This document shows positions 6,701-64,000 of a stretch of DNA of 64,000 bases, in pieces. Source of the DNA: Thalia democratica. Taxonomy: Eukaryota. The stretch is from contig OZ241831.1 of NCBI GenBank assembly GCA_965202585.1, forward strand, positions 41,602,001 to 41,666,000. The letters run 5' to 3'. The notes under the pieces are model-generated. The model did not search any database. It saw nothing but the letters and a program-made list of their open reading frames with translations, and was not told the DNA's origin. Position 1 is the stretch's first letter, and every line of letters begins with the position of its first letter. Made by a program: the position numbers and the translations under genes.

Positions 6701-8150
6701 AAATGTAGTAAAAACAATCGTAGTAAAATCATAAGTAAAAAAAATTAAAAACAAAGTTTTGAAACTTTATAATTATTTTGTACATTATCTTGTAACTTAA
6801 ACTAATACTTGAGTACAAAATACTTTAAGTATTGGGTGGTAAGTTTTATAAAACATTTTAATTACTTTTTTAACTTGAATAAGACGCAAAAAAAAGCTTA
6901 GCTATCTTGTTTAAAACATAAAAAAATTTAAACGAATTATATATTGAAATCTGAACTTAAAAAACTTCGAATGAATACAATATTTAGGGATTTAAACTTT
7001 CTATAAATTTTAGGCTCCAATAAACGGTTGTATTGACTCAAAATATAAATTAATAAGTATGAGTAACTAGGATTTTTCTTTTAAGTTTTCGGTTGTATAA
7101 TTTTTTTTAACTTAAAATCTTCTATACCGTTATTTTGATAATAATATATTTGTAAAATAAATAAACTAATTAAGTTTATATAATAAAATTAAAATTAGTT
7201 TAAAACAGTTGTATTTTTTTATTCAAACGATAACAAGTTTTGTAGTAGTCCGTAGTTTTCAAACTTCCTAAAATTTGTAAAATTGTTTATAAAAGTTACA
7301 GATTTTTCAATTTCTGAACCAAACCACCGGCCTAATTAACACAAAACTTACACAGTGACACACTGAATTTAAAAAGATCATAATCAAACAATTCAACTGA
7401 AGTAAAAAATTAAATAACGGTTTTTCAAGTAAAATAGTAAAAAAAAATCATAACAATAGTACTTCTTACCAAGATAAAAGTAGTTAGTTATAATGAAAAC
7501 AGCTAAAATCAAGGCTTAAAAACTAGCCAGGAGTTTCTGTAAAAGATATCAAATTTAACTTTAAAACAGAGCCTTTGTTAGTCTGACAATGTTGTATTTT
7601 AACAATATAAGTCGTAAAATTAACCGATTTTTGTCATAAGTAATTTGTTACTATTAATTGCGTGTTAGGGCGATTAATGCACAAAATTGTAAGCTTATGC
7701 AAAATTTAAGGTAACTCTAAAAAGTAAAATTGTTTACTAACAAAAAATATTATTACTTTTTTTTAGTTTGGATATTTAAAAAGTTTAATTGTTTAAGTAA
7801 AAAATTAACTTAATTCTAAAAGCTAAATTTACAAGGACCACACTTTTTTTGAATGCTTTTTTGTCGTATAATAAACTAAACTTTTATATTCTATATAAAA
7901 GTATAAATTTCTCAATTACATACTGAATTTTATTAACCATGTTTACCTTATGGTTTATATATGTTTGAAGAATATTGTTATCTATTGTTATTTCTAACGC
8001 AATAAGATAATAACTTAGTTCAATTTTTCATCATAATTTATTGTTACATTTTAACATGCTTAAGTATTTTTAACATCCTTAAATATGTTTTCTTAGTTTT
8101 ATAAATGCTTATGTGATAAAAACATACATTTGGTATGTTGATATTTAGAT

Positions 8151-8303
8151 CAGGGGTTTCCAAATCGATAAGCATCTCCTTTTTGGTAAAAATTTAGATG
8201 GAAAATTAGCCAGCAGTAAAGCGGTTATATCCAATGAAGGGTGGCGATTAGTTTTTAAGCTATGCACAGTGGGTAATAAAGAAATGTATTTTTAAAAACC
8301 CTA
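8151..8303. mobile_element. Degenerate hAT-type MITE
   Basis: Termini CAGGGGTTTCCAAA ... TTTAAAAACCCTA. Confidence 0.5.
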
Positions 8304-9004
8304 GTTTAATATAACCAGTATTTATAGACCGTATATACAAACAGAGAACTATTGAACTATGTTTAACGCTCGGTTCGAATTTCTAGTTATAAGTATTCCA
8401 GTTACAACCTAGCTCTTATGTTTAGATAAGTAGGTATTTATAACTAAAAAAGTTTTGTAAACTAGCTATAGTATGATATGACAAACATGCTTAACTTAAA
8501 TGCCTTTTAATTAAGGAGTGCAAAAAGGTTTACAAAATTAAATTTAATTGTAGTAAATTTGAAAGCAAAATCCATAAAATAATCTAGTGCAACGATTAGT
8601 TAAACTTGATTATTTACTTCTTTAATTTTAAGGTGCTTTTATAACAGTGTATGTAAGCTTTTTTTCAGTAGTACTTACGGCTATGGATTAAAAAGTCTTT
8701 TAATACTTATTTAGCTAAAGCTAATATTAATAAGGACAATTAGCGGATAGATTCACAATAGATCGCTCGTTCCGTGACTAAAAAACTGATAACTAGTCGA
8801 CTAGAATCAGCTTTGGGCCGAGAACTTAAATTGGCTTTAAAGAAGTGTTTCATGAAATATTATAATAGTTAAAAACAACTTTGGTTTTTAACGACAAAAA
8901 ATTGATTTCTAAATACATAAGCAAAATTTTAATGAATTATTTGTTTTCAAAATTTAAGAAATAAAATCTTTAATATGACGTAATAAAAGTATTTTAAAAA
9001 TGGG

Positions 9005-9012
9005 TATATAAA
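9005..9012 (+). promoter_or_regulatory. Candidate TATA box of SET gene A
   Basis: TATATAAA about 85 nt upstream of the ATG. AT-rich background limits specificity. Confidence 0.35.
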
Positions 9013-9093
9013 CTCAGTTTAAAATTGAATCTTAATTTTTTTGTTAAAGCAAAAATCCGCTTCAAAAGTAGTTGAAGTTGTCCAAGCAAAAAC

Positions 9094-10366
9094 ATGAGAA
9101 CAAAAGTAACAAAAAAAAAGTTAAATTATTGGTCAAGAAGGCAAATGGGGCGAAAGACTATTGCCCGCGCCAAAAGGCAAACGGGAAGAAAGACCATTGC
9201 CCGCGCCATAAGGCAAACGGGAAGAAAGAGCCTAGTCCCCGCCTTAAACCGACCGGCAAGTGAGATCGCCTTAAACCGACCGGCAAGACAGATCGCCTTA
9301 AACCGACCGGCAAGACAGATCGCCTTAAACCAACCGGCAGGAGAGATCGCCTTAAACCGACCGGCAAGTGAGATCGCCTTAAACCAACCGGCAGGACAGA
9401 TCGCCTTATACCAACCGGCAAGACAGATCGCCTTAAACCAACCGGCAGGAGAGATCGCCGTAATGCAACCGGATCGAGTGGTAGCCAGAAGAAATATTCC
9501 ACAAAACGAACACGTGAGAACATTTGCTCCGATACGAATCTTTATGGATGAAAATAATATCCCTCAATATCTGAAAGTTTTCCGAGAGCCAAATTATAGA
9601 CTTGCATATAGTCTTCCAGCAGCACCAAGAGACATTTTTGACGATTACTACAGATCTAATCCGCAAAGACATCACGTTTGGTCGGACCACATCGTGGTTA
9701 GGAGGGACCTTGAAATCGATATTTCCGCAACCCGAGGAAGTTATGTCAATAGGCAACAGTTGTTAAATTACAGCCATGACTATCTTGCCAGTCCTGAACT
9801 CTTTTTTTACTTGAACTATCTCAGTAATCGAATGGGACATGGACTGTTTCCTAATTGTGAAATACAACCAGGTATGTTTGATTGTTTTAGTTCTTGTTGT
9901 AATATACAATTCATTTGTACGTTTTGTTTCAGCACTTGCTCTTAACAACTTAACACTTTGTAATATTAACAACTGGTGATTTTCAGGCAGCATAATTGGA
10001 GAGTACGCCGGTGAGCTCATCACGATGCAGGAGTATCGTGCAAGGCTGAGAAGAGTGACGAGAAACGGAACCTGCAACTACTTTTTTGAAACCTGTATCA
10101 CCAACATGGTGATAGACGCGGGCCCGATTGGCAACCACACCAGATTTATCAACCACGATTGCGAAAATTTCAACTGCGCGATAGTGTTCGCACTTCACAA
10201 TGGCATCCCAAGGAACTATGTTATCAGCATTAGAAGAATTAGAGCAAACGAACAAATCTTAATGAATTACGGAAGAGATTATTTTACTGACACGGAATGT
10301 CTATGTGGATCGGATAATTGCGTTACTCGAATTCGGGATATAACAGATGAAGTTGACGAAGAGTAA
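9094..10366 (+). CDS. SET + post-SET lysine methyltransferase-like gene A, 385 aa; exons 9094-9871 and 9987-10366
   Basis: Phase-1 intron 9872-9986 (GTATGT...GATTTTCAG) joins two ORF-track fragments in frame (778+380 nt). The spliced product has the SET motifs MGHGLF, IIGEYAGELI, IDAGPIGNHTRFINHDC, EQILMNYG and the post-SET CLCGSDNC. AATAAA follows the stop at about 10375. Confidence 0.9.
9139..9231 (+). repeat. 36-nt (12-aa) coding tandem repeat, ~2.6 copies, encoding RQ(M/T)GRK(T/S)IARA
   Basis: Units start at 9139, 9175 and 9211. Confidence 0.95.
9241..9483 (+). repeat. 27-nt (9-aa) coding minisatellite, 8 full copies plus 1 degenerate, AL(N/Y)(R/Q)PA(R/S/G)(Q/E)I
   Basis: GCCTTAAACCRACCGGCARG...ATC units start at 9241, 9268, 9295, 9322, 9349, 9376, 9403, 9430 and 9457. 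Confidence 0.95.
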
Positions 10367-12215
10367 AAATGTACAATAAAAACAGCACTAGATTTTTGTT
10401 TGTGTTTCTTTTTTATTTAGTTATGTTTTGTTAAGTATTCACTCCCCAAGATTCATATAATACTTGGTAATAACACTAGTAAATTTAAAAAAATAAATAT
10501 AATTATTTCAATTTTTAACTTAAGTTTTTAATAAAAAAAAAGTGTAATTTATTTTTTAGATACGCTAGAAGTAACCCGATCATATCTAACCTAGTCATTT
10601 CTAACACGATATAACCCGATCATTTCTAACTCGATCAGTAAAAACTATCTTATTTTAATCAGGATTTAATTTAAAAGCAAACTAATCTTAAAAAAATTAT
10701 TCTTATTTTAAGACATAGAAATAAATAGTTTATATAGTGTTACTTGAAATTTGTTCTTGGTATAAGTTTTATTTTAACTTATTTTTTTCTTTATATCAAC
10801 CTGCTTCAATGGAAGTTGTTTTGGTTGAACAAAATTTTCTAAACTGTTTGACGCTTTTTTAAATTGTTTGTTGGATTCTTATAGTAATCTGTTATAGTTA
10901 TGCTTAAGTTGGATCTTCTTGTCAGTTACATAGTTAGAATTTTTTCAAGGCAAGTAAATTATAATAATTAGACCTGCAAAAATTTAATATTCAGATATCC
11001 AACTATTACAGTTTATAAGTTATGCTGAAGTCTAGCGCTGCGGTTGTTTACAAATCTGTTACTTTTTTATAGTCAATTAGCTTTTATTTTCAGCTTAAGA
11101 ATTTGCACAAGTTGTTCTATAACTTGCACAGGCCTACTTAGATAACCAAACTTATACAGAAGTTAGGCGAACTTGAACATTTTTCTTTTATTTCTAATCT
11201 TCGTATACCATAAAAAGTAACTGAAATTTTAAAGAAAGTTTACTAGACGAGATTTGATCTCATTTTTTAAATTTAAATTTCAAAGATTTAAAAAAAGTTT
11301 GTTGGTTCCCAGCAAAATTTACTGCTCTAAAGTTGAACTGTCTCTTAAAATAAACTGAAAATGTGCCAATTATGTAGTCAACAATACTACCTAAAACTTA
11401 AAACTTTTTGAATATGCCGCTTTTATAACAAGTTTTTACAAAAATGAATGTTAATTACGACTGATACTTAAAAAACTTCAACTTCAGAAAAACAAACTTA
11501 TTTGAATTAAGTTTTTTGAAACTTTACCAGAACATTGTACTAAAAATATTCTTTTAATTATCGAATGTTGGCTAAAAATTAATTTTAAAGGTAAAATACG
11601 TTTATACAATTAATTTTAGAAATAAAAATTCTATAAAACCAACAACTAATAAACTAAATTAAGACATCAGCCTTTGTTTTATCTTTTTATAGTAAGTCTT
11701 TAATTACAATTTATTAAAAGCATAGTAAAACAACAAATACATTGTTACATTAGCGGTTATTATACACAATGGAAGTTAAAAGTGAAAACAAATATGTTAA
11801 ATTACTAACTATTTAATTAAAGTAAACGTTTTCCGTATTCGTAAATTAAATCTTTGTTTTTGTTGCATAAATTATTTTATTATTCTTGAAAGTCACAAGC
11901 TAAACTTTAAAAATATGATGATTGACCTAAGAAACTATTTGATATTTTTCTAATTAAGTTAATATTATTCAAGACATTGGTAAACTTCGGCCTATGGTAA
12001 AAACGTAGAAAGCAAACTAAAAACTGCTGCAGGTACTTTTAAGCTTAAACTGTACTTGTTTGAAACAACTTAGAAAAAGTTAAAAACCAAAACTTATTGA
12101 TAGTTATTACTCAACTATTGTTTTTTGTTTAAATACCATTTATTTAGATAGTTATATTTATTATGATTAAAATATTATTGAAATAACTGCAGTCCCGCAG
12201 GACTTATTTTTATAC

Positions 12216-12869
12216 TAGGGGTACGCAACGTTTTTCAATATACGGGCCGGATCCGGAAAAATTTAGTATTTTGCGGGCCGGAGCTTTTCGAGTTAGTGAT
12301 TTACTGGATCCAGCCGAATAACGAGTTTTTAGATTTGAATCCGACTAGATACTTATTTTAAGTCGAGATACGGATCTGGTTGGATTCTAATGTAAATAAA
12401 AGTTTCGGATCCGGCCGTAATCTAATTTTATGGATACAGTTGATCACTTTTTTACATCCTTCAAATTGAAAAAACTTTCTCAAGTCTGACAACTTAAGAT
12501 GTAGATTGAGACATGTCAGATGTTTAAATAATGTCTATAAACAGAATTGACATTGTAATTGACAAAGGTACGTATTTAAAATAAATAAAAAAACACTTTG
12601 CTTGGGATATTTTACTAAAAGATATTCTAACTAATTTAGAGAAATATTATGACAAAATAGTGTGTTTATTAGTACACATTATTTTATAAAGTAGTTTTTT
12701 AGCATATTTTTTAAGTCAAATTCTTACAGTGATTTGTAAAAATATGATACAAAGTTATATACAAATGTTGTAGTATTGACCCTTTGCAGGCCTGTAAATT
12801 TCCTAGCGGGCCAGTAATTTTCATTTGCGGGTCGGATCCGGCCCGAGGGCCGTACGTTACCCACCCCTA
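12216..12869. mobile_element. Non-autonomous hAT element with intact TSD and nested inserts
   Basis: TIRs TAGGGGTACGCAACG / CGTTACCCACCCCTA, perfect 8-bp TSD TTTTATAC on both sides, subterminal GCGGGCCGGATCCGG motifs. Confidence 0.85.
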
Positions 12870-13023
12870 TTTTATACGCTGCGGCATGCGAGCAACTTTT
12901 TAAGGAAACTCGGCTTGTTACTTGTAAAAGACTACTGACACCTGTTTGTATACTAGTTTTTAATTTAAACATATTTTTTTAATTATTCAAATCAATCAAA
13001 TATTACGACAAATATCTCTACTA

Positions 13024-13090
13024 CAGGGTTTCCAAAACTTTTTTTAAAAAACCCCTTTAAAGAAGTTAAAAAAGCTATGGCCTCATCCAA
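13024..13090 (+). mobile_element. hAT MITE left-end fragment
   Basis: Starts CAGGGTTTCCAAAACTTTTTT, the same TIR family as 29292. Confidence 0.6.
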
Positions 13091-13625
13091 TAAGATTTTT
13101 CGAAAAACTACCATTAAAAACAATTAATTTTTTTTTAGCTACTTAACATCAACTTTTTGACTAGTAGTTGTAACTTAGATAAAGTATTTATGTTACTGTT
13201 AAATATAAAAAGGTAAAAAAAAGCTTCACTAACAATTCAACAACGACTGAATGTTTCGGGGAGAACCTGTAGATTAAAAGCCACTCAAGGGTTTGATCTG
13301 GACAAAGAAATGAGGCAATTTTTTACGAATGTAAGGGGTTGCTGCTAAGTAGAGCGGTAGGTTGCATTTCGACTGAAACTATGCAATATAAGACGTAACA
13401 ATTGGATAAATAGCGAACTTCGACTGAAACGATGAAAAAGATGACGTAACAATTGGAAAACTTCGTAATTTTAAAATGACACAATACTGGCAACTTTGTT
13501 CCTTGCATTACGGGAAGCGCGCTGCATTAAGCAAAACTAAGCTTTTATGCCGAAATTATTCAAGAAAATTAGCTTTCCTTTTGGGGAAAATTTACTTTTG
13601 CGCTGAAACTTCATACACTTTAACT

Positions 13626-13750
13626 GGGTAAGCTGTCAAATTTGCACGAGCGTACAAAATTGCACGAGTGCACAAAATCGCTAAAATAAACTTTTGCACG
13701 AAGACACTATGCACGAGGGAATAAAATTGCACGACAATACATTTGCACGG
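13626..13750 (+). mobile_element. Solo left arm of the TGCACG-repeat transposon family (also 35681-35805, 58146-58270)
   Basis: GGGTAAGCTGTC...GAGCGTACAAAAT matches the 2407 terminus. Confidence 0.65.
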
Positions 13751-16222
13751 GTTATTTTTTTCTTATTTAATTTATTTTTTTTATTATCACTTTTTACCCT
13801 AACGCTTACCCTCGGTCGAAGAATCGAAACGTAGATGCCTAATAAAGTTTTTCATACTGTAATGAAATCAATATTTGATTTTATTATTTTAAATAAATGA
13901 GTAAATAAGGAGTTTTTTGTTTCGACGGCGTAAAACATTCATAATTCTTAGAAATGAGTTATTTTAAACCAAAAACAATAATAAGCTTTCTGAAAACAGT
14001 TTTCCAAGTTTTTAAAACATTATTGTTAATTCGAAGAAGTTAGTTTCTTTCCAGTGCGTGTATATCGGTGTTTGTGTTTCAAATACGCGTTAGTTAGTTA
14101 AGTTTTTGTGCGTTTCGTACGCCGTCTTAAGTCACGATGATGATCAACGCAACATCAAGTTAAGTTCAAGCTAATGAAGTAAAATCTACATCGAAAAAAG
14201 TATACGTTTTCTAGTGAAGAATAAGTTACACATTGTCAAGCAACCAGAACACCTAGTCGTGTCTAAGAACATCAATCTAAACGAGTTCCTTGATCGAACA
14301 ATTCATTTGTCAAGACCATAAGTATCTTTGCATACATTTTTTTAAAATAGACTATTTGTTTATTAACTAATACAGTTCTTTCTTGAGTTTTAAAATACTA
14401 CTTGACATTAATTCATAGAGTGTTTCAATCATGACTTAGTAACAAGTTACTTTAAGTTTTGTAACTTTAGTATTGTAAGGTACTCTTAAGTAAAGCAGTC
14501 AGTTTAGCTTAAGTACTTAGAAACCATGTTTAAGACGATAAACATAACCAGTTTTATAAATATTTCTCTGTGGTTATAATACTTTACTATGTTTTCAATA
14601 ATATTTAATTCAACCTAAAACGATGTAAAAAATATTTATCATTAAGAAGTACCAATAATTGGGTTATAACTTAGCAATATTAGTTAAAAATAAAAAATAA
14701 ATACTTGTTTTAAAAAATAATGAAAACTAACAATTATACTCCAACAGCAAAAAATAAATAAAAAAGGATCAAAAAATATATATGTTTGTTAAAGACAAAA
14801 TCTAGTAATAGACCTGTTTTCAAAGGCAAACTCTTATTGTTTTGTTTTGTCGAAACCATGTTACAGGCTTCATGCAAATTTTGTAATATTATCTTTAGCG
14901 GGCCGGATTTCGTATTAATTTTGAAAAACGTTAAGCTGGCCGGTCACTTTCACTCGCGGGCCGTACGTCACTCACAACAACGGTTTGTAGTTGTCAACCA
15001 CCAATATTTGTTGGAAGATCAAAGAAATCGGCCTGGTGACAGAATACGTTTGATCTTTTTTTGTTACCAAGATGAGCTGTATCTTTGAAACAACTAATAG
15101 CAAAAAAAGATCTACCTACAGAAATAGCTAACTATGTTTTTTAATATTTAAAATACTAATTTAAAGTAAAAATACATGTTGTAGAGTTTATTCAACTTCT
15201 AAATTGTGTTTTGATATTGTTAAGTCACCAATAAAAAACTAGAATTTCTATACTTAACAATTTAAAAGTTTATCGTATTTTAATCAAAAAATAATTCTTG
15301 AACATACTGTAAGTACAAACATGAATTTTCAACATAAACATCTAATTTTACAACATGTAAAACAGCTATAACTGTATATAAAAAACTTGTTTTATTCATT
15401 TCACATTTAACAATTTATATTCTTTTTATGCTTTTATTTTATATTGTAAAAACGTGTTACAAATTTATCTAATTTTCTTTCATAATAATTTTTTAAGACA
15501 TTGTGGTTATTTCAACAAGTTAATGATTTTATTTTGCTGAACTATGATTTTTTAATTCTACTTGAAAATTACTTCTATTATGTCACAAAATTAATTATAA
15601 AAGTTATTCCTAGTTGCTTATTTTACACAACTAACTGCACGAAAACTTTTCTCTATTGTTATTTTACTTAATAAGTAATATTATATATATTAAAACCTTA
15701 GAAATCAATCATTAAAAAAATAAGTAAAAGGACTTTTTAAATAATAACAAGTATTATGCAGAAATTTGAGGCATGATTGGTTTAATTTTTTTTTTTTAAA
15801 CAAAAAAGTTAAATCGATTTTAAATAACACTTATCAACTACTTGTTTTTATAATTGTTGTTTGTCACTTATTTTATATATTTATCGTATTTTGTGTTTTT
15901 ATTTTTATACGTTTGCTTATCTTAGTTAAATTACTAATCAATCTATCTAAAAACATGTAATTATAAACTGTTAATTGGTATTAATTGAACTTTTTCTCAT
16001 GAAACCTCCAACTGTTTATTTACTCAAAATTTATCTTCAAAATTAGTTGCTAACATTAGATATTGATAATTTTTAGCTGAAATCAATTTTACTTGTTTGT
16101 TTAAATAAAAATGTTTTTGAACAAATCATGTTTCAAACTTCTTTTTAGTATATGTATTACAAAAAAGTTATATAGTAGCAAGTATAAATAATTATTTTAT
16201 GTTTATTTTATAATTTGTACGC

Positions 16223-17178
16223 TTATTTTTTTTCGGTCTCTAGTGACGTATTTCTCGATAAGCAGTTTTTTGAATTACACTCACAATCAAAATCACGAAA
16301 ATACCCTTCTCCGTACCAAATGAAGAGTTGCTCACTAGCTCTGATAACTTTTTTGCTGATGATAAAGTTCCTAGGAATTCCATTTATCAGAGCGTACTCT
16401 GTCCTGCAGTTCAACTTTTCTTCGCAATCGTGGTTGATGTACCTGGTATGGTTGCCCATTGCGCCCGCGTCAATATCAAAATTCGTGCATGTGCTGAAAT
16501 AGTAGTTGGTAGCCCCTTTATTCTCACGCCACCTTTTAGTCTTTTCTTCTTTTGAAATAAGCTCGCCTGTATACTCTCCTATTATTGAGTCTGAAAATCA
16601 ACAAATAATAAGTTTAATATCCAAGCTAGTAGTTTAATTTAAGAATTATTTAGTCAAAATTTTCATTATAACAAAAAAAAGTTGTACATTGAAAAAAAAG
16701 TTAAACAATGAAACTAACTTGCTGGTATAGCATGCTTAGCGAACAGTCCACGGCCCATATCACCACTAAGATTGTCCACATAAAAATGTTTTTCAGGATC
16801 GTCGAGGCAGTCATGATTGAACTTTTTCAAACTATCCAGTTCAATAAAAGAAGCTACATGTTTCATCTCATCCAAATAAGTACCGCTTCCAATCACGAGG
16901 TGGTTCGTCCAAACATGATGCTTCTCTGTATTGAAATGATAGTAAGGATCAAAAACGTCGTCAGGCCCTTCCTTGAATGTCCTTTTAACTTCGAATTTTC
17001 CCTCCAAAGCAATTTTTTTCCACTTTTGCCTGCTTGACGATCGTATTTTAATGCTGAGTGGTGCATATTTTTTCAACGTATTCCTGATTGGAACACTTCT
17101 TATAACGGTCTTCCTTGCTGTCTGCTTTTTGTAGCTTTTTATTCTTGATTGCTTACTGGAACTTGTTTTTACTGGCAT
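16223..17178 (-). CDS. SET + post-SET gene B copy 1, 275 aa; exons 17178-16719 and 16590-16223
   Basis: Phase-1 intron 16718-16591 (GTTAGT...GATTTTCAG) at the same position as in gene A; 460+368 nt in frame. Motifs MGRGLF, IIGEYTGELI, IDAGAMGNHTRYINHDC, EQLFIWYG, CECNSKNC. Confidence 0.9.
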
Positions 17179-37952: not shown

Positions 37953-38908
37953 TTAATTTTTTTCGGTCTCTAGTGACGTATTTCTCGATAAGCAGTTTTT
38001 TGAATTACACGCACAATCAAAATCACGAAAATACCCTTCTCCGTACCAAATGAAGAGTTGCTCACTAGCTCTGATAGCTTTTTTGCTGATGATAAAGTTC
38101 CTAGGAATTCCATTGATCAGAGCGTACTCTGTCCTGCAATTTAATTTATCTTCGCAATCGTGGTTAATGAACCTGGTATGGTTGCCCATTGCGCCCGCGT
38201 CAATATCAAAATTCGTGCATGTGCTGAAATAGTAGTTGGTAGCCCCTTTATTCTCACGCCACCTTTTAGTCTTTTCTTCTTTTGAAATAAGCTCGCCTGT
38301 ATACTCTCCTATTATTGAGTCTGAAAATCAACAAATAATAAGTTTAATATCCAAGCTAGTAGTTTAATTTAAGAATTATTTAGTCAAAATTTTCATTATA
38401 ACAAAAAAAAGTTGTACATTGAAAAAAAAGTTAAACAATGAAACTTACTTGCTGGTATAGCATGCTTAGCGAACAGCCCACGGCCCATTTTACCACTAAG
38501 ATTGTCCACATAAAAATGTTTTTCAGGATCGTCAAGGCAGTCATGATTGAACTTTTTTAAACTATCCAGTTCAATAAAAGAAGCTACATGTTTTATCTCA
38601 TCCAAATAAGTATCGCTTCCAATCACGAGGTGGTTCGTCCAAACATGATGCTTCTCTGTATTGAAATGATAGTAAGGATCAAAAACGTCGTCAGGCCCTT
38701 CCTTGAATGTCCTTTTAACTTCGAATTTTCCCTCCAAAGCAATTTTCTTCCATTTTTGCTTGCTTGACGATCGTATTTTAATGCTGAGTGGTGCAAATTT
38801 TTTCAACGTATTCCTGATTGGAACACTTCTTATAACGGCCTTCCTTGCTGTCTGCTTTTTGTAGCTTTTTATTCCTGATTGCTTATAAAAACTTGTTTTT
38901 ACTGGCAT
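37953..38908 (-). CDS. SET + post-SET gene B copy 2, 275 aa; exons 38908-38449 and 38320-37953
   Basis: Same structure with a GTAAGT donor. Intact frame; 14 aa differences from copy 1 by hand count. Confidence 0.9.
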
Positions 38909-58300: not shown

Positions 58301-61300
58301 TTATTATCACTTTTTACCCTAACGCTTACCCTCGGTCGAAGAATCGAAACGTAGATGCCTAATAAAGTTTTTCATACTGTAATGAAATCAATATTTGATT
58401 TTATTATTTTAAATAAATAAGTTAAAAAGGAGTTTTTTGTTTCGACGGCGTAAAACATTCATAATTCTTAGAAATAAGTTATTTTAAACCGAAAACAATA
58501 ATGAGCTTTCTGAAAACAATTTTCCAAGTTTTTAAAACATCATTGTTTACTCGAAGAAGTTAGTTTCTTTCCAGTGCGTGTATATTGGTGTTTGTGTTTC
58601 AAATACGCGTTAGTTAGTTAAGTTTTTGTGCGTTTCGTACGCCGTCTTAAGTCACGATGATGATCAACGCAACATCAAGTTAAGTTCAAGCCAATGAAGT
58701 AAAATCTACATCGAAAAAAGTATACGTTTTCTAGTGAAGAATAAGTTACACATTGTCAAGCAACCAGAACACCTAGTCGTGTCTAAGAACATGAATCTAA
58801 ACGAGTTCCTTGATCGAACAATTCATTGTCGAGACCATAAGTATTTTTGCATACATTTTATTATAATAGACCATTTGTTTATTAACTAATACAGTTCTTT
58901 CTTGAGTTTTAAAATGCTACTTGACATTAATTCATAGAGCGTTTCAATCATGACTTGGTAACAAGTTACTTTAAGTTTTGTAACTTTAGTATTGTAAGCT
59001 GCTTTTAAGTAAAGCAGTCAGTTTAGCTTAAGTACTTAGAAACCATGTTTAAGACGATAAACATAATCAGTTTAATAAATATTGTTCTGTGGTTATAATA
59101 CTTTACTATGTTTTCAATAATATTTAATTCAATCTAAAACGATGTAAAAAATGTTTATCTTTAAGAAGTAGCAATAATTGGGTTATAACTTAACAATACT
59201 AAATACAAAAAAAAAAATTGTTTAAAAAATAATGAAGATTAACAGTTGTACTCCAAAAGCAAAAAATAAAAAAAGGATCAAAAAAAATATATGTTTGTTA
59301 AAAATAAAATCTATTAAAAGGTATAGAAAATTTATATGTATAAATTTTTTTTGCCCTTATAACTATATTTTAACCACTAAAAATACACCTAAAATTGAGT
59401 TTTTATTCTTAATAGTTTAAGTTTACTAGTTGTATAAAAGGTTTTTTAATTTGGTCATAATAGGACCCGTAATTAACCTGTTTTCAAGGGCAAACTCTTA
59501 TTGTCTTGTTTTGTCGAAACCATGTTACAAGGTTTTATAAAAATTTCGTAATATTATCTTTGGCGGGCCGGATTTCACAATGTGCTTTTTTCACATTTTA
59601 TATTGTAAAAACGTGTTGCAAATTTATCTAATTTTTTTTTCGTACTGATTGTTTAAGACGTTGTGGTTAGTTTTAACAAGTTACTGATTTTATTTTGCTG
59701 AACTATGATTTTTTTATTCTATTTGAAAATTACTTCTATAATGTCTTAAAATAAATTATAAAAGTTATTGCTAGTTGCTTATTTTACAGAACTAACTGCA
59801 CGAAAACTTTTCTCTATAGTTATTTTATTTAATAAGTAATATTATATATATTAAAACCTTAGAAACCAATCATAGAAAAAAAATAAAAGGACTTCTTAAA
59901 TGATAACAAGTGTTATGCAGAAATTTGAGACATGATTAAATCAAAAACATAATTATTTAAACAAAAAAGTAAAATGGATTTTAAATAACACTTATCAACT
60001 ACTAGTTTTTATGATTGTTGTTTGTCGCTTATTTTATATATTTATCGTATTTTTTGTTTTTATTTTTATACGTTTGCTTATCTTAGTTAAATTACTAATC
60101 AATTTATCTATAATTATGTAATTATAAACTGGTAATCTGTCTCTAATTGATTTTGCTTAACTATGCTAATTAGTATTAATTGAATATTTTCTAATTAAAC
60201 CTCTAAATGTTTATTTACTCAAAATTTATCTTTAAAATTAGTTGCTAACAAAAGAAGTTGATAATTATTAGCTAAAATCGATTTTACTTGTTTGTTTATA
60301 AAAATATTTTTTTAAAGGAATCATGTCTCAAATTTCTAATTAACATATGTATTACAAAAAAGTTATATAGTAGCAAGTAAAAATAATTATGTTATGTTTA
60401 TTTTATAATTTGTACGCTTAATTTTTTTCGGTCTCTAGTGACGTATTTCTCGATAAGCAGTTTTTTGAATTACACGCACAATCAAAATCACGAAAATACC
60501 CTTCTCCGTACCAAATGAAGAGTTGCTCACTAGCTCTGATAGCTTTTTTGCTGATGATAAAGTTCCTAGGAATTCCATTGATCAGAGCGTACTCTGTCCT
60601 GCAATTTAATTTATCTTCGCAATCGTGGTTAATGAACCTGGTATGGTTGCCCATTGCGCCCGCGTCAATATCAAAATTCGTGCATGTGCTGAAATAGTAG
60701 TTGGTAGCCCCTTTATTCTCACGCCACCTTTTAGTCTTTTCTTCTTTTGAAATAAGCTCGCCTGTATACTCTCCTATTATTGAGTCTGAAAATCAACAAA
60801 TAATAAGTTTAATATCCAAGCTAGTAGTTTAATTTAAGAATTATTTAGTCAAAATTTTCATTATAACAAAAAAAAGTTGTACATTGAAAAAAAAGTTAAA
60901 CAATGAAACTTACTTGCTGGTATAGCATGCTTAGCGAACAGCCCACGGCCCATTTTACCACTAAGATTGTCCACATAAAAATGTTTTTCAGGATCGTCAA
61001 GGCAGTCATGATTGAACTTTTTTAAACTATCCAGTTCAATAAAAGAAGCTACATGTTTTATCTCATCCAAATAAGTATCGCTTCCAATCACGAGGTGGTT
61101 CGTCCAAACATGATGCTTCTCTGTATTGAAATGATAGTAAGGATCAAAAACGTCGTCAGGCCCTTCCTTGAATGTCCTTTTAACTTCGAATTTTCCCTCC
61201 AAAGCAATTTTCTTCCATTTTTGCTTGCTTGACGATCGTATTTTAATGCTGAGTGGTGCAAATTTTTTCAACGTATTCCTGATTGGAACACTTCTTATAA

Positions 61301-64000
61301 CGGCCTTCCTTGCTGTCTGCTTTTTGTAGCTTTTTATTCCTGATTGCTTATAAAAACTTGTTTTTACTGGCATTTTATAGTTGAGAAATTTAGCATATAA
61401 ATGACTATAAATATGTTAGATAAGTAATTTAAGAAACTTATACTGTTATAATATATTTTATATCCGCAGTATGTATCATAAGTTTATCTAAAGCTTGAAA
61501 ATTTCGAATGATACTTCAACCTTTTTCATATAAACCAGGAAAAACAAATGAGTTATTAGATAAAAATCTAAAACATTATACATAAAGAGTAATATACCAG
61601 ATTTTATAAATAAAACAAGTTATTATTAAATTGAGTTTTAGAAAATTCTGAATTTTAAAATGTTATTATACCATACCTGATTCCCACATCAACAGTTTTT
61701 TTTTTTAAGTGTTAAATAAACAAATTAAAATAGCAACTATTATCAAATCCCTGTAAAAGATGATTAATAATTGATTAAGAAAATGAAGGTAGAGATGGAT
61801 ACCGAACTCAGATACAAAAACCAAGTTGTAAGAAATGCAAGAAATGATAATAAACTATCAACCTAGGAAAAGATAATTGTCAATTAGAATATAAAATGCA
61901 ATTGAAGCTTACAAAAAAAGAATAAGTTACAGCAGATAATGAAAAATAAACAGCAGGTCTTATCAGTAATGAGAGAAAAAAGTATACTGTGAATCATTGC
62001 TAGTGAAACTGCAAAGCATGAAAAAAATCTGTTATCTAATGTTAACAAAATTGAGAACTTTCAAAGGAATTTCAATTTTTAAACACAGGGTGTATCAATT
62101 GAAAGATAATGAGAAATCTAAAAATACTAACAAAGTATTACTAGAAAATAGTATTACTGTTCAACAAATTTATTTAATATTATTATTAATTTAATAAAGT
62201 GTTGGAAGGAACAAAAAAGAAAGTTAATAAAATAATAAACATTTATAAAATTAAACTTGTTAAATATAACAACTTTAAACAAAATGACTGTTCACTTGAC
62301 TTATTATATATATACACTCCTAAAACATAAATCTAACAACAAATATAACTACATAACCTGAAACTTTATCTATACTAAGTTAACTTAACACTAACCTTAA
62401 CAACTGAAAACAACTTTTTTTATGTTCGCATGCGTGTAATTGAACATTTGTGGTTTGTGGTGTGACCTCAGAACTCGAGACAACACTGTTGGGCATAGTA
62501 TTTTGAGAGAATTTAGGGTTTTATAACCCGCGACGAGTTCAAAAGACTTTTTTGCTTAAATAATTTTCAAATGTTTAGGCTAACCCAGAACATCGACACC
62601 TTGTGATGAATTTCCCGTATTTTTTTTAAGTCTTGTTTTTCTAAAAGCGAAATGGTGCAATTCCGTGGATTTGAACTTACCAGGAACAAAAGAACTAGAA
62701 AAAACTTACCAGGAATAAAAGAAGGCAGGGATATAAATCTAAAAAAAGTAAAGAAAACATTTAATGCTAAAGTTTAATATAAATGAGGTTAAAATTAAAC
62801 TATGTTTCTCAATAACAGAGTTTTTATTTGTTCTCTTTCTAACAATAAAATAAACAAAGAATACTTTTCAAGTGAGTCATATGATTTTTTAAATTGTTTT
62901 TTTCGAAATACTTTTTAATTTTTGTTATGATCAATATAAAGCTTTTGATAGTAATAGTGGTATTCTAATTACAGAACTTAATTTTGATATTGAGACTGGA
63001 CAAACTTTTGTTAGTTCACAATACATATCTAGTAACGTTAATCCATTTTAGTTTATAGTAAATGAAACTGAAAAACTACAAATATAATAAGATAAAACAA
63101 ATCTTCCTAAACAACAGTGTTTAACAGTTACTTGCATATAAAAGATTTTAGAAAAGCTTAGCAGTAACATAATAGAATCGCTGGAAACAACTAGTGTTGA
63201 TATTAAAGTAGCCTTCAGAACAGATTTAGTTGGAAACTATTTCTCATTGAAAGATCGAATGGATAAATTTTACAGGAGTTGCATCGTTTACAAGTTTCAA
63301 TGTCCGGGTGACCTGGATACCCAATTCAAGTATAACTCTATAATAAAAAAAATAAAAATAAAAGTTAAAGGGAAAAAATGTACCAGATAAAATATTTCTA
63401 AAGTTTAACTTAAGGTAAGTTCTAAACCTAGGATATCTAAAGCCGTGTTTACATTTACAAAATAAATAATAAGCTATTCAAAACTATTTGCAAAAACAGT
63501 TTTAAAAGTCAAGTAAAGGTAAAACATAATAAAAAACTGAGAAATAAATTAAAATATCAAAATTAGTCTAAAAAACATACTTTGAAACAAACATTCTAAT
63601 TAACATAAATCAAAACACTCTTAAATAAAAATTAAATGTATTTTTTTAAATTTAAAGAGTTATCAATGAAATATGCAACAAAAACAAAAAGAAAACTACT
63701 TCCTACTTAAAATTTAAATAAATAAAGTTGTTTTCAAAGCTAATTGATATAGTTTATAAACATAACACAAGATTTGCTTATTAGTAAACAGACATGTCAG
63801 TAACATAAATCAATCAAAAATAATGCAGTAATATAAAATACAGCAGAAACAGTTTCATCTGGTATGATGCGATAAATGTTGAAGTATATAACGTTACAAA
63901 AATTTAAACTCAAAGAAAGCCAGTAGTGAGGATTAGATATCAGTCAAATTCTTAAAAAAGGCAACATTGTATCTCTAGTAACTAAAAAAAACTAATTAGT
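55391..64000. repeat. Tandem segmental duplication unit 3 (partial, runs off the window)
   Basis: Matches 32926-41535 with no difference in spot checks. Confidence 0.93.
60418..61373 (-). CDS. SET + post-SET gene B copy 3, 275 aa; exons 61373-60914 and 60785-60418
   Basis: Copy 2 shifted by 22465 bp; ORF-track translations are identical. Confidence 0.88.

Follow-up and report, generated by a model that had tools for sequence, protein, structure and literature searches.

Our analysis concerns a 64,000-nucleotide (nt) stretch of the Thalia democratica genome (contig OZ241831.1, positions 41,602,001 to 41,666,000; hereafter the window) and, within it, gene A, a two-exon gene encoding a SET-domain protein with a repetitive N-terminal tail (9094-10366, exons 9094-9871 and 9987-10366; positions are those of the window, and gene A lies on the plus strand throughout). 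The repeats in this tail begin as copies of a short motif that resembles the tail of histone H3 and continue as related copies that lack its lysine. The reading that we favor, to which we assign a probability of about 0.65, is that the repeats form an in-frame coding minisatellite in the disordered tail of an expressed, lineage-specific SET methyltransferase, and that the array is mainly a flexible, non-methylatable spacer of dead (Lys-less) mimic units.

Tandem Repeats Finder (TRF) reports two arrays in the tail, one of period 36 at 9138-9229 (2.6 copies, 91% matches, score 149) and one of period 27 at 9240-9472 (8.6 copies, 90% matches, score 347). In the reading frame of the gene, the tail runs from MRTKVTKKKLNYWSRRQM through three 12-residue units, eight 9-residue units and the single unit AVMQPDRVV into the block ARRNIPQNEHVRTFAPIRI, and its parts are as follows.

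9148-9255, plus strand: three 36-nt Lys-bearing units, GRKTIARAKRQT, GRKTIARAIRQT and the hybrid GRKSLVPALNRP (TRF and in-frame reading)
9241-9456, plus strand: eight 27-nt Lys-less units, ALN[RQ]PA[RSG][EQ]I, in the order a-b-b-c-a-d-e-c (TRF and in-frame reading)
9457-9483, plus strand: degenerate terminal unit AVMQPDRVV (f), which corresponds to AVRNQQGRVV in the relative L031 and, in the orthologue, to the unit that was amplified
9484-9540, plus strand: junction block ARRNIPQNEHVRTFAPIRI, conserved in the family and marking the start of the ordered core (family alignments and AlphaFold2)

The units lie head to tail, fall within 10-100 bp, have lengths that are multiples of three and leave the frame open, as a coding minisatellite does, and all units of the gene A array are in frame within the open reading frame (ORF) of the mRNA. 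The 36-nt units carry GRK[TS], and RQTGRKT, present three times, resembles H3 residues 4-10 (KQTARKS). An earlier, sequence-only reading of this DNA had counted three such live, Lys-bearing copies, and all three read in frame. In a context like that of H3 4-10, the 36-nt units have A/G-R-K-S/T, which is missing from the 27-nt units because they have no Lys. At the Lys position, the former have the codon AAG and the latter CAG or GAG, each of these one step away, and 37/37 gene A units encode E or Q there. The same reading had spoken of nine dead copies with Q or E. Eight units answer to this description, but the ninth, AVMQPDRVV, has Val at the Lys position. It had also likened QPARQ in these copies to H3 QTARK, yet the Arg before the Lys position is found in only 3/8 window units (ARQ), the others reading ASE, AGE or AGQ. 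The unit that it quoted, ALNQPARQI, is the TRF consensus and does not occur in the window array, although it does occur in the copy on contig C416 and in the mRNAs described below.

On the alignments, the 27-nt and 36-nt units are homologous, and the Lys-less units derive from the Lys-bearing unit. The previously reported match of 20/27 nt between them was reproduced exactly. Its proponents had staked the proposal beforehand on the units being more alike than composition-matched random sequence, and this is the case. None of 5000 mononucleotide shuffles reached 20 with all 36 x 27 rotations allowed (mean 14.5, maximum 19); codon-order shuffles did so in 0/20000 trials and in-frame mononucleotide shuffles in 3/20000. 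The unit types that really occur (a-e and g) each match the 36-nt unit at 18-20/27, a score equalled in no more than 0.0025 of shuffles. The alignment with one codon gap holds over 30 of the 36 nt, but the full units differ in length by 9 nt, and MAFFT, run on gene A against the related contig L031, aligned the two unit types with a gap of 9 nt. In addition, the third 36-nt unit (9220-9255) is a hybrid, in which the 5′ part is a GRK unit and the 3′ part (GCC TTA AAC CGA CCG) is already a 27-nt unit. A single template, I-A-x-(R/N)-Q-(T/P)-x-R-(K/E/Q), describes the tail units of 9, 10 and 12 residues.

We regard it as very improbable that the two unit types have separate origins and are alike by chance or through shared composition. 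Such an explanation would draw on the high guanine-plus-cytosine (GC) content of both arrays, 55-56% in a very AT-rich, eukaryotic window of 27.5% GC, and on the similar residue types that they encode. However, composition-matched and codon-order shuffles almost never attain the observed match, the hybrid third unit joins the two arrays, and bridging units are present in L031 and in the orthologous proteins P0155 and P0156. The similarity of the units, the hybrid, these relatives and the repeats in paralogues also support the earlier proposal that the mimic unit spread in tandem into Lys-bearing and Lys-less copies.

Gene A is an expressed SET-domain gene. The principal transcript is L032, a 1294-nt polyadenylated ocean metatranscriptome contig that encodes the database protein P0001 and aligns to 9029-9872 and 9984-10398 at 99.3-100%. 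The splice, the 5′ end of the mRNA and the poly(A) site that follows AATAAA are all confirmed by this alignment, which gives the following gene model.

9005-9012, plus strand: TATA box (TATATAAA), about 24 nt 5′ of the mRNA start; L032 and a second mRNA contig, L058, both start at about 9029
9029-9093, plus strand: 5′ untranslated region (5′UTR), from the start of the L032 alignment at 9029; contains the conserved element 9057-9080
9094-9871, plus strand: exon 1, with start codon, N-terminal tail and N-terminal half of the catalytic core (ORF and spliced mRNA L032)
9872-9986, plus strand: intron of 115 nt, GT..AG (mRNA L032 and RNA contigs)
9987-10366, plus strand: exon 2, with the C-terminal part of SET (NHDC, Tyr of NYG), the post-SET CLCGSDNC and the stop codon
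10376-10398, plus strand: poly(A) signal AATAAA and poly(A) addition site; the L032 poly(A) tail begins after 10398

In L032 itself the junction joins 9872 to 9984. The contig L058, which encodes P0151, comes from the same sample and has an identical 5′ beginning; both mRNAs are polyadenylated and spliced and carry the array in frame. The 115-nt GT..AG skip is also seen in RNA-library contigs of two studies, X5 (2016) and X6 (2025, oligo-dT). For searches the two exons were used separately, with P0001 taken as the natural full-length product. Two other open frames overlap the array. A minus-strand ORF of 121 residues (9158-9523) was rejected as a by-product of the repeat, since the poly(A) tail and the GT..AG intron set the polarity of the mRNA, and a second forward frame (9241-9483, LKPTGKTDR..., which has Lys) was ruled out by the ATG of the mRNA and the downstream SET frame.

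The array varies between the copies of gene A. In the 801-Mb genome the 27-nt unit is found in two places only, the C7 locus (this window) and the unplaced 54-kb contig C416, where 16914-24421 matches window positions 7396-14808 at 97-98.5%. C416 is probably the other haplotype, and possibly a very recent duplicate. With the two mRNAs, this gives four unit maps.

Window (C7): a-b-b-c-a-d-e-c-f, 9 units
C416: a-b-b-g-c-h-g-c-a-d-e-c-f, 13 units
mRNA L032: a-b-b-i-a-h-e-c-f, 9 units
mRNA L058: a-b-b-g-c-a-d-e-c-f, 10 units

Repeat number, whose polymorphism across individuals the sequence-only reading had named as a check on its proposal, thus differs between these sequences, with 9-13 units and a different internal map in every one of the four. 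The ends of the array are constant and the middle is variable, the pattern of classical minisatellites, and the maps themselves show an array that turns over by gain, loss and replacement of units. The number of Lys-bearing units varies as well, because the third unit of contig X3, from a differently labelled organism, has six changes in 17 nt that turn RQTGRKS into KQTAKDS. Logan contigs break within the array and give no copy numbers. Exact-pattern matches to the 27-nt unit numbered zero in JGI metagenome contigs, a set that may not include close records, and we give this result no weight. As a separate observation on C416, the A9 run just past the ATG at 9112-9120 is A8 in that copy (L002), so that its first ATG is out of frame; this is either a homopolymer assembly error or frameshift, or an allele that starts at Met18 (MGRK).

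The tail architecture extends beyond the species. An exhaustive protein search and a cluster look-up returned P0155, P0156 and P0006, which are encoded by polyadenylated mRNAs of another species and have 42% protein identity to gene A. The transcripts L056 and L057 share with gene A a 5′UTR element, CCGCTTCAAAAGTnnTTGAAGTTG...TCCAAGCrAAAAC-ATG (about positions 21-62 of L056 and L057), and we read the three proteins as orthologues because this element is shared and, in the window, occurs only at gene A. A core-region tree built for the placement of P0006 gave an unresolved polytomy. In gene A the element lies at 9057-9080, includes a 6-bp inverted repeat, CTTCAA-N6-TTGAAG, and has a single occurrence in the window. 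Since the ATG is equally placed after the shared 5′UTR in the orthologue, the start codon of gene A is set at 9094. The element is conserved between gene A and the orthologue despite 42% protein identity, is absent from the paralogous gene B, and may be a regulatory hairpin.

The orthologue tail reads MPRKK...RQPRKRQ-[QGRK or PVPE], then 6-7 units, RKIIVPRRR, QVARKTGVRKQPMGE or LQVREIALRNQPVPE, and finally AINRESVRKFAP. Its 6-7 Lys-less units are ten residues long, I[AV][VL]RNQP[VM][RP]E, with the form I-A-V-R-N-Q-P-V-R-E. The alignments thereby show the tail architecture of gene A shared with a second species, where it is built from 10-residue units. P0155 and P0156, two transcripts of one sample, differ at array positions as QGRK/PVPE and ARKTG/VRE, that is, as Lys-bearing and Lys-less forms. 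The Lys position holds E in 20/21 orthologue units, and E or Q in 57/58 units over the two species. The best unit identity between species is 7/9 residues, which column shuffles reach in 0.25% of trials, and the unit DNA is identical at 20/27 nt (hand count).

The closest relative from another species is L031, a Tara metagenome contig that is 83% identical to gene A, intron included. Its tail has one 36-nt unit, a single 27-nt unit AVKQTTRGI, AVRNQQGRVV and the conserved block, which makes it a bridging form. Deletions of 5 nt in exon 1 and 4 nt in exon 2 give it the look of a pseudogene, and it is probably that or an error-laden assembly. Several other hits to the tail were discarded. P0051/L051, with IARNRPALK units and 47% identity to the gene A tail by HMMER, was rejected as an unrelated minisatellite because its DNA unit match is 13/27 (chance level), it has a stop in frame and its flanks hold no SET gene. 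P0069 and P0088, which matched residues 31-114, are unrelated low-complexity repeats with quite different units and no SET-family core, and P0015 and P0020-P0023, which matched the same residues, were set aside by protein length and match position only.

The array may be a neutral, young minisatellite that is merely tolerated and has no function, not even as a spacer, an account that we consider unlikely. A 27-nt period preserves the reading frame automatically, the units are about 90% alike, their number and order differ among copies, the relative L031 is without the array, and the region is predicted to be disordered, all as neutrality would have it. Yet a like array stands at the equal position in the orthologue despite 42% protein identity, it is retained in all four gene A sequences and the three orthologue transcripts, and L031, the sole array-less relative, looks like a pseudogene.

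Exon 1 has at least 51 matches in the genome, most of which lie in tandem clusters, and the family is lineage-specific and amplified in tandem. In many of the paralogues that were read, an H3-like motif stands shortly before a conserved LKKFAPL block. The gene B group has KKQTARKT, with an exact KQTARKT; L010 has KKSARKSP...KRTGRKSP; L024 has TGRKSSGKRAGRKSS; L025 has KQTARKTGKQTAKKTARKRAPQ; and P0005, a relative from elsewhere, has KKQTARKTGGKARKTGGIARKTPGK. The ARK motif is multiplied in tandem in L010, L024, L025 and P0005, so that its multiplication is recurrent in the family. The organism's own H3 is canonical (KQTARKS), and one variant H3 reads KQTARKT. Gene B lacks the insert, as had been noted before, and the Lys of its KQTARKT is 15 residues before the conserved xAP block. 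Between the last Arg-Lys motif and the core lie 11-15 residues in the four paralogues of this genome for which the distance was measured, namely gene B, L010, L024 and L025, and 21-23 residues in three relatives from elsewhere. In gene A, the last Arg-Lys-Ser/Thr is 99-135 residues from the core.

AlphaFold2, run on P0001 with a 22-row family alignment, gave tail residues 1-119 a predicted local distance difference test (pLDDT) score of 31-46, and the entire tail is predicted to be disordered on this basis. The score climbs to 84 at residues 121-130, and the core (120-368) is confident. Three features make the spacer reading the best fit: the predicted disorder of the tail, a variable copy number, and a distance between Lys and core of 99-135 residues vs 11-15. 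Under this reading, the Lys-less units would not be methylatable and would serve chiefly as a flexible, proline-punctuated spacer, which would put some 100-135 residues between the core and the live H3-like motifs. The longer tether may then change whether, or how, the enzyme's own tail reaches the active site or shows a methylated Lys to reader proteins.

Several observations weigh against this spacer reading. The units are conserved between species (20/27 nt, best 7/9 residues) to a degree about equal to or above that of the core (42% of residues overall), and E or Q at the Lys position is nearly invariant; because a pure spacer need not be so conserved, a sequence-specific role of the Lys-less units is possible. 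AlphaFold2 docked no tail Lys in the active site of P0001 or P0005, the tails being low-confidence or a generic basic helix. The copy numbers from metatranscriptomes come from short-read assemblies, which are prone to repeat mis-ordering, and C416 may be a recent duplicate instead of another allele. Finally, L031, with its two frameshifts, may have lost units and not kept the ancestral state.

A more specific role would be that of functional decoys, in which the Lys-less units act as multivalent, non-methylatable H3-tail look-alikes, in the enzyme's own substrate groove or on H3-tail binders, and copy number tunes activity or targeting. We hold this to be doubtful. The units do retain part of the H3 4-9 pattern (N/K-Q-P/T-A/V-R), E or Q is near-invariant at the Lys position (57/58 units), the unit sequence is conserved with the orthologue at 7/9 residues (0.25% of column shuffles), and the architecture is kept in two species. 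However, most gene A units (SE, GE, GQ) have lost the Arg before the Lys position, as have the MPE and VPE units of the orthologue, no docking of the tail was predicted, and the array length varies freely among alleles. In addition, the known dominant SET inhibitors, the K-to-M oncohistones and EZHIP, require at the Lys position a side chain that is hydrophobic and shaped like lysine, such as Met, Ile or norleucine (PMC5030085; 10.1101/585729), and the non-hydrophobic, non-methylatable H3K9R had little effect (PMC5030085), a comparison that covers K9R. At that position the gene A units have E or Q instead (37/37). An inhibitor of the K-to-M or EZHIP type is therefore unlikely here because Q and E are polar, and the analogy to it drawn in the sequence-only reading is weak, the more so as the preceding Arg is often gone. 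It is further conceivable, though we think it improbable, that the Lys-less units are not inert and that a heritable, length-variable array provides a built-in multivalent competitor or reader-binding platform, with flips between Lys-bearing and Lys-less units tuning the enzyme allele by allele.

Some features of the wider family stand apart from the array. Gene B lies in a tandem duplication of about 22.5 kb (window 16253-17178, 37983-38908 and 60448-61319, minus strand), and the chromosome carries at least five nearly identical copies one after another (C7:41640465-41729981). L013 (C7:41752353-41752715) has another tail repeat, a 25-residue unit KTPSS[LH]ARHLSQMSPVSPVNKRARR, present twice before PRKS. 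At L004, L014, L015, L018, L019, L022 and L030, tblastn passes the intron position in one frame (ORFs of 315-351 residues), where the intron would be either stop-free in frame or exonised. P0003, a protein of 802 residues from another organism, has two complete family modules (N-terminal core and SET) in tandem, with an acidic N-terminal region ahead of them. L033, L034 and L038 (C8:39.62-39.65 Mb) form a cluster of histone H3 variants with altered tails (e.g. ARTKQAAKKSTGG), next to long tandem arrays that contain canonical H3 copies by the hundred.

The catalytic half of the protein is intact by its motifs. Exon 2 matches the Pfam SET family PF00856 (E = 2.8e-15, 57.1 bits, cut-off 22.4), and exon 1 matched no Pfam family and no AWS. 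The GxG (MGHGLF), NHDC (RFINHDC), Tyr (EQILMNYG) and post-SET (CLCGSDNC, CxCx4C) motifs are all present and align to NSD3. No Cys cluster was found in residues 120-259, so that the Cys-rich AWS of the SET2/NSD clade is absent before SET. Among PDB sequences the best match of the core is NSD3 (E = 1.2e-18), with NSD2, NSD1 and SETD2 also closest. By predicted fold the top matches are 6cen (NSD3), 6vdb and 3ooi, and the nearest enzymes are NSD3, SETD2, NSD1/2 and ASH1L; G9a/GLP and SUV39H2 rank far lower. Alignments made from database proteins (A2 and A3) were used in place of A1, built from separate exon pieces of paralogues, in which MAFFT had put the ends of exon-1 pieces under exon 2. The H3K9 label of the sequence-only reading does not carry over to the enzyme: its SET domain is nearest to H3K36 enzymes (NSD3, NSD2, NSD1 and SETD2) and not to G9a/SUV39, and the label therefore rests on the tail motif.

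The comparison with known enzymes thus begins with the SET2 clade (NSD, SETD2 and ASH1L), which provides the best sequence and fold matches of the gene A core and shares the post-SET CxCx4C. In contrast to that clade, gene A is without AWS, the N-terminal half of its core has no Pfam family, and its protein is small (about 385 residues) and belongs to a lineage-specific, tandem-amplified family. Single-site histone-like motifs are already known from the methyltransferases G9a, GLP and SETDB1 and from the EZH2 loop. The N-terminal, automethylated ARKT mimic of G9a/GLP (EHMT2/EHMT1) and the H3K9-like automethylation motifs of SETDB1 are similar to the present case in that a methyltransferase carries a short H3K9-context motif outside or beside its catalytic fold; the motif reads RQTGRKT in gene A and KQTARKT in paralogues, and H3 reads KQTARKS. 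The cases differ in that the gene A catalytic domain is NSD/SETD2-like, the motif is tandemly multiplied, most copies are Lys-less, and the motif is here a putative methylation site. Once methylated, the motifs of G9a and SETDB1 serve to recruit chromodomain proteins (references in PMC8541646; 10.1101/2025.10.22.683908).

Similar to K-to-M oncohistones and EZHIP, the Lys-less units are substrate-like peptides with another residue in place of the target lysine, which rules out methylation, and the PDB holds SETD2 complexes with K36M and K36I (5jjy and 5jlb). Unlike them, the gene A units carry Gln or Glu, are mostly without the flanking Arg, lie in cis and are repeated. In the literature searched we found no account of a histone-like motif that has expanded into a tandem array containing Lys-less copies. 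Here the histone-like motif acts as a repeat unit, multiplied and mostly Lys-less, and the numbers of live and dead copies differ by allele and species. If the tail interacts with the active site or with histone readers, the alleles would offer a natural variant series in motif number and tether length, and regulation of a SET enzyme by a histone mimic in cis would be directly testable with recombinant alleles. If it does not, the locus clearly exemplifies how a functional motif can give rise to a coding minisatellite. The practical reach is limited, as the source is an uncultured-looking marine zooplankter.

PRDM9, a SET/PR-domain methyltransferase, contains a zinc-finger array that is itself a coding minisatellite, or variable number tandem repeat. 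The gene A array has in common with it head-to-tail units of a length that is a multiple of three, a variable number and order of units, fixed ends and a variable middle. The PRDM9 units are folded, DNA-binding zinc fingers, whereas those of gene A make up a predicted disordered segment that derives from a histone-like motif.

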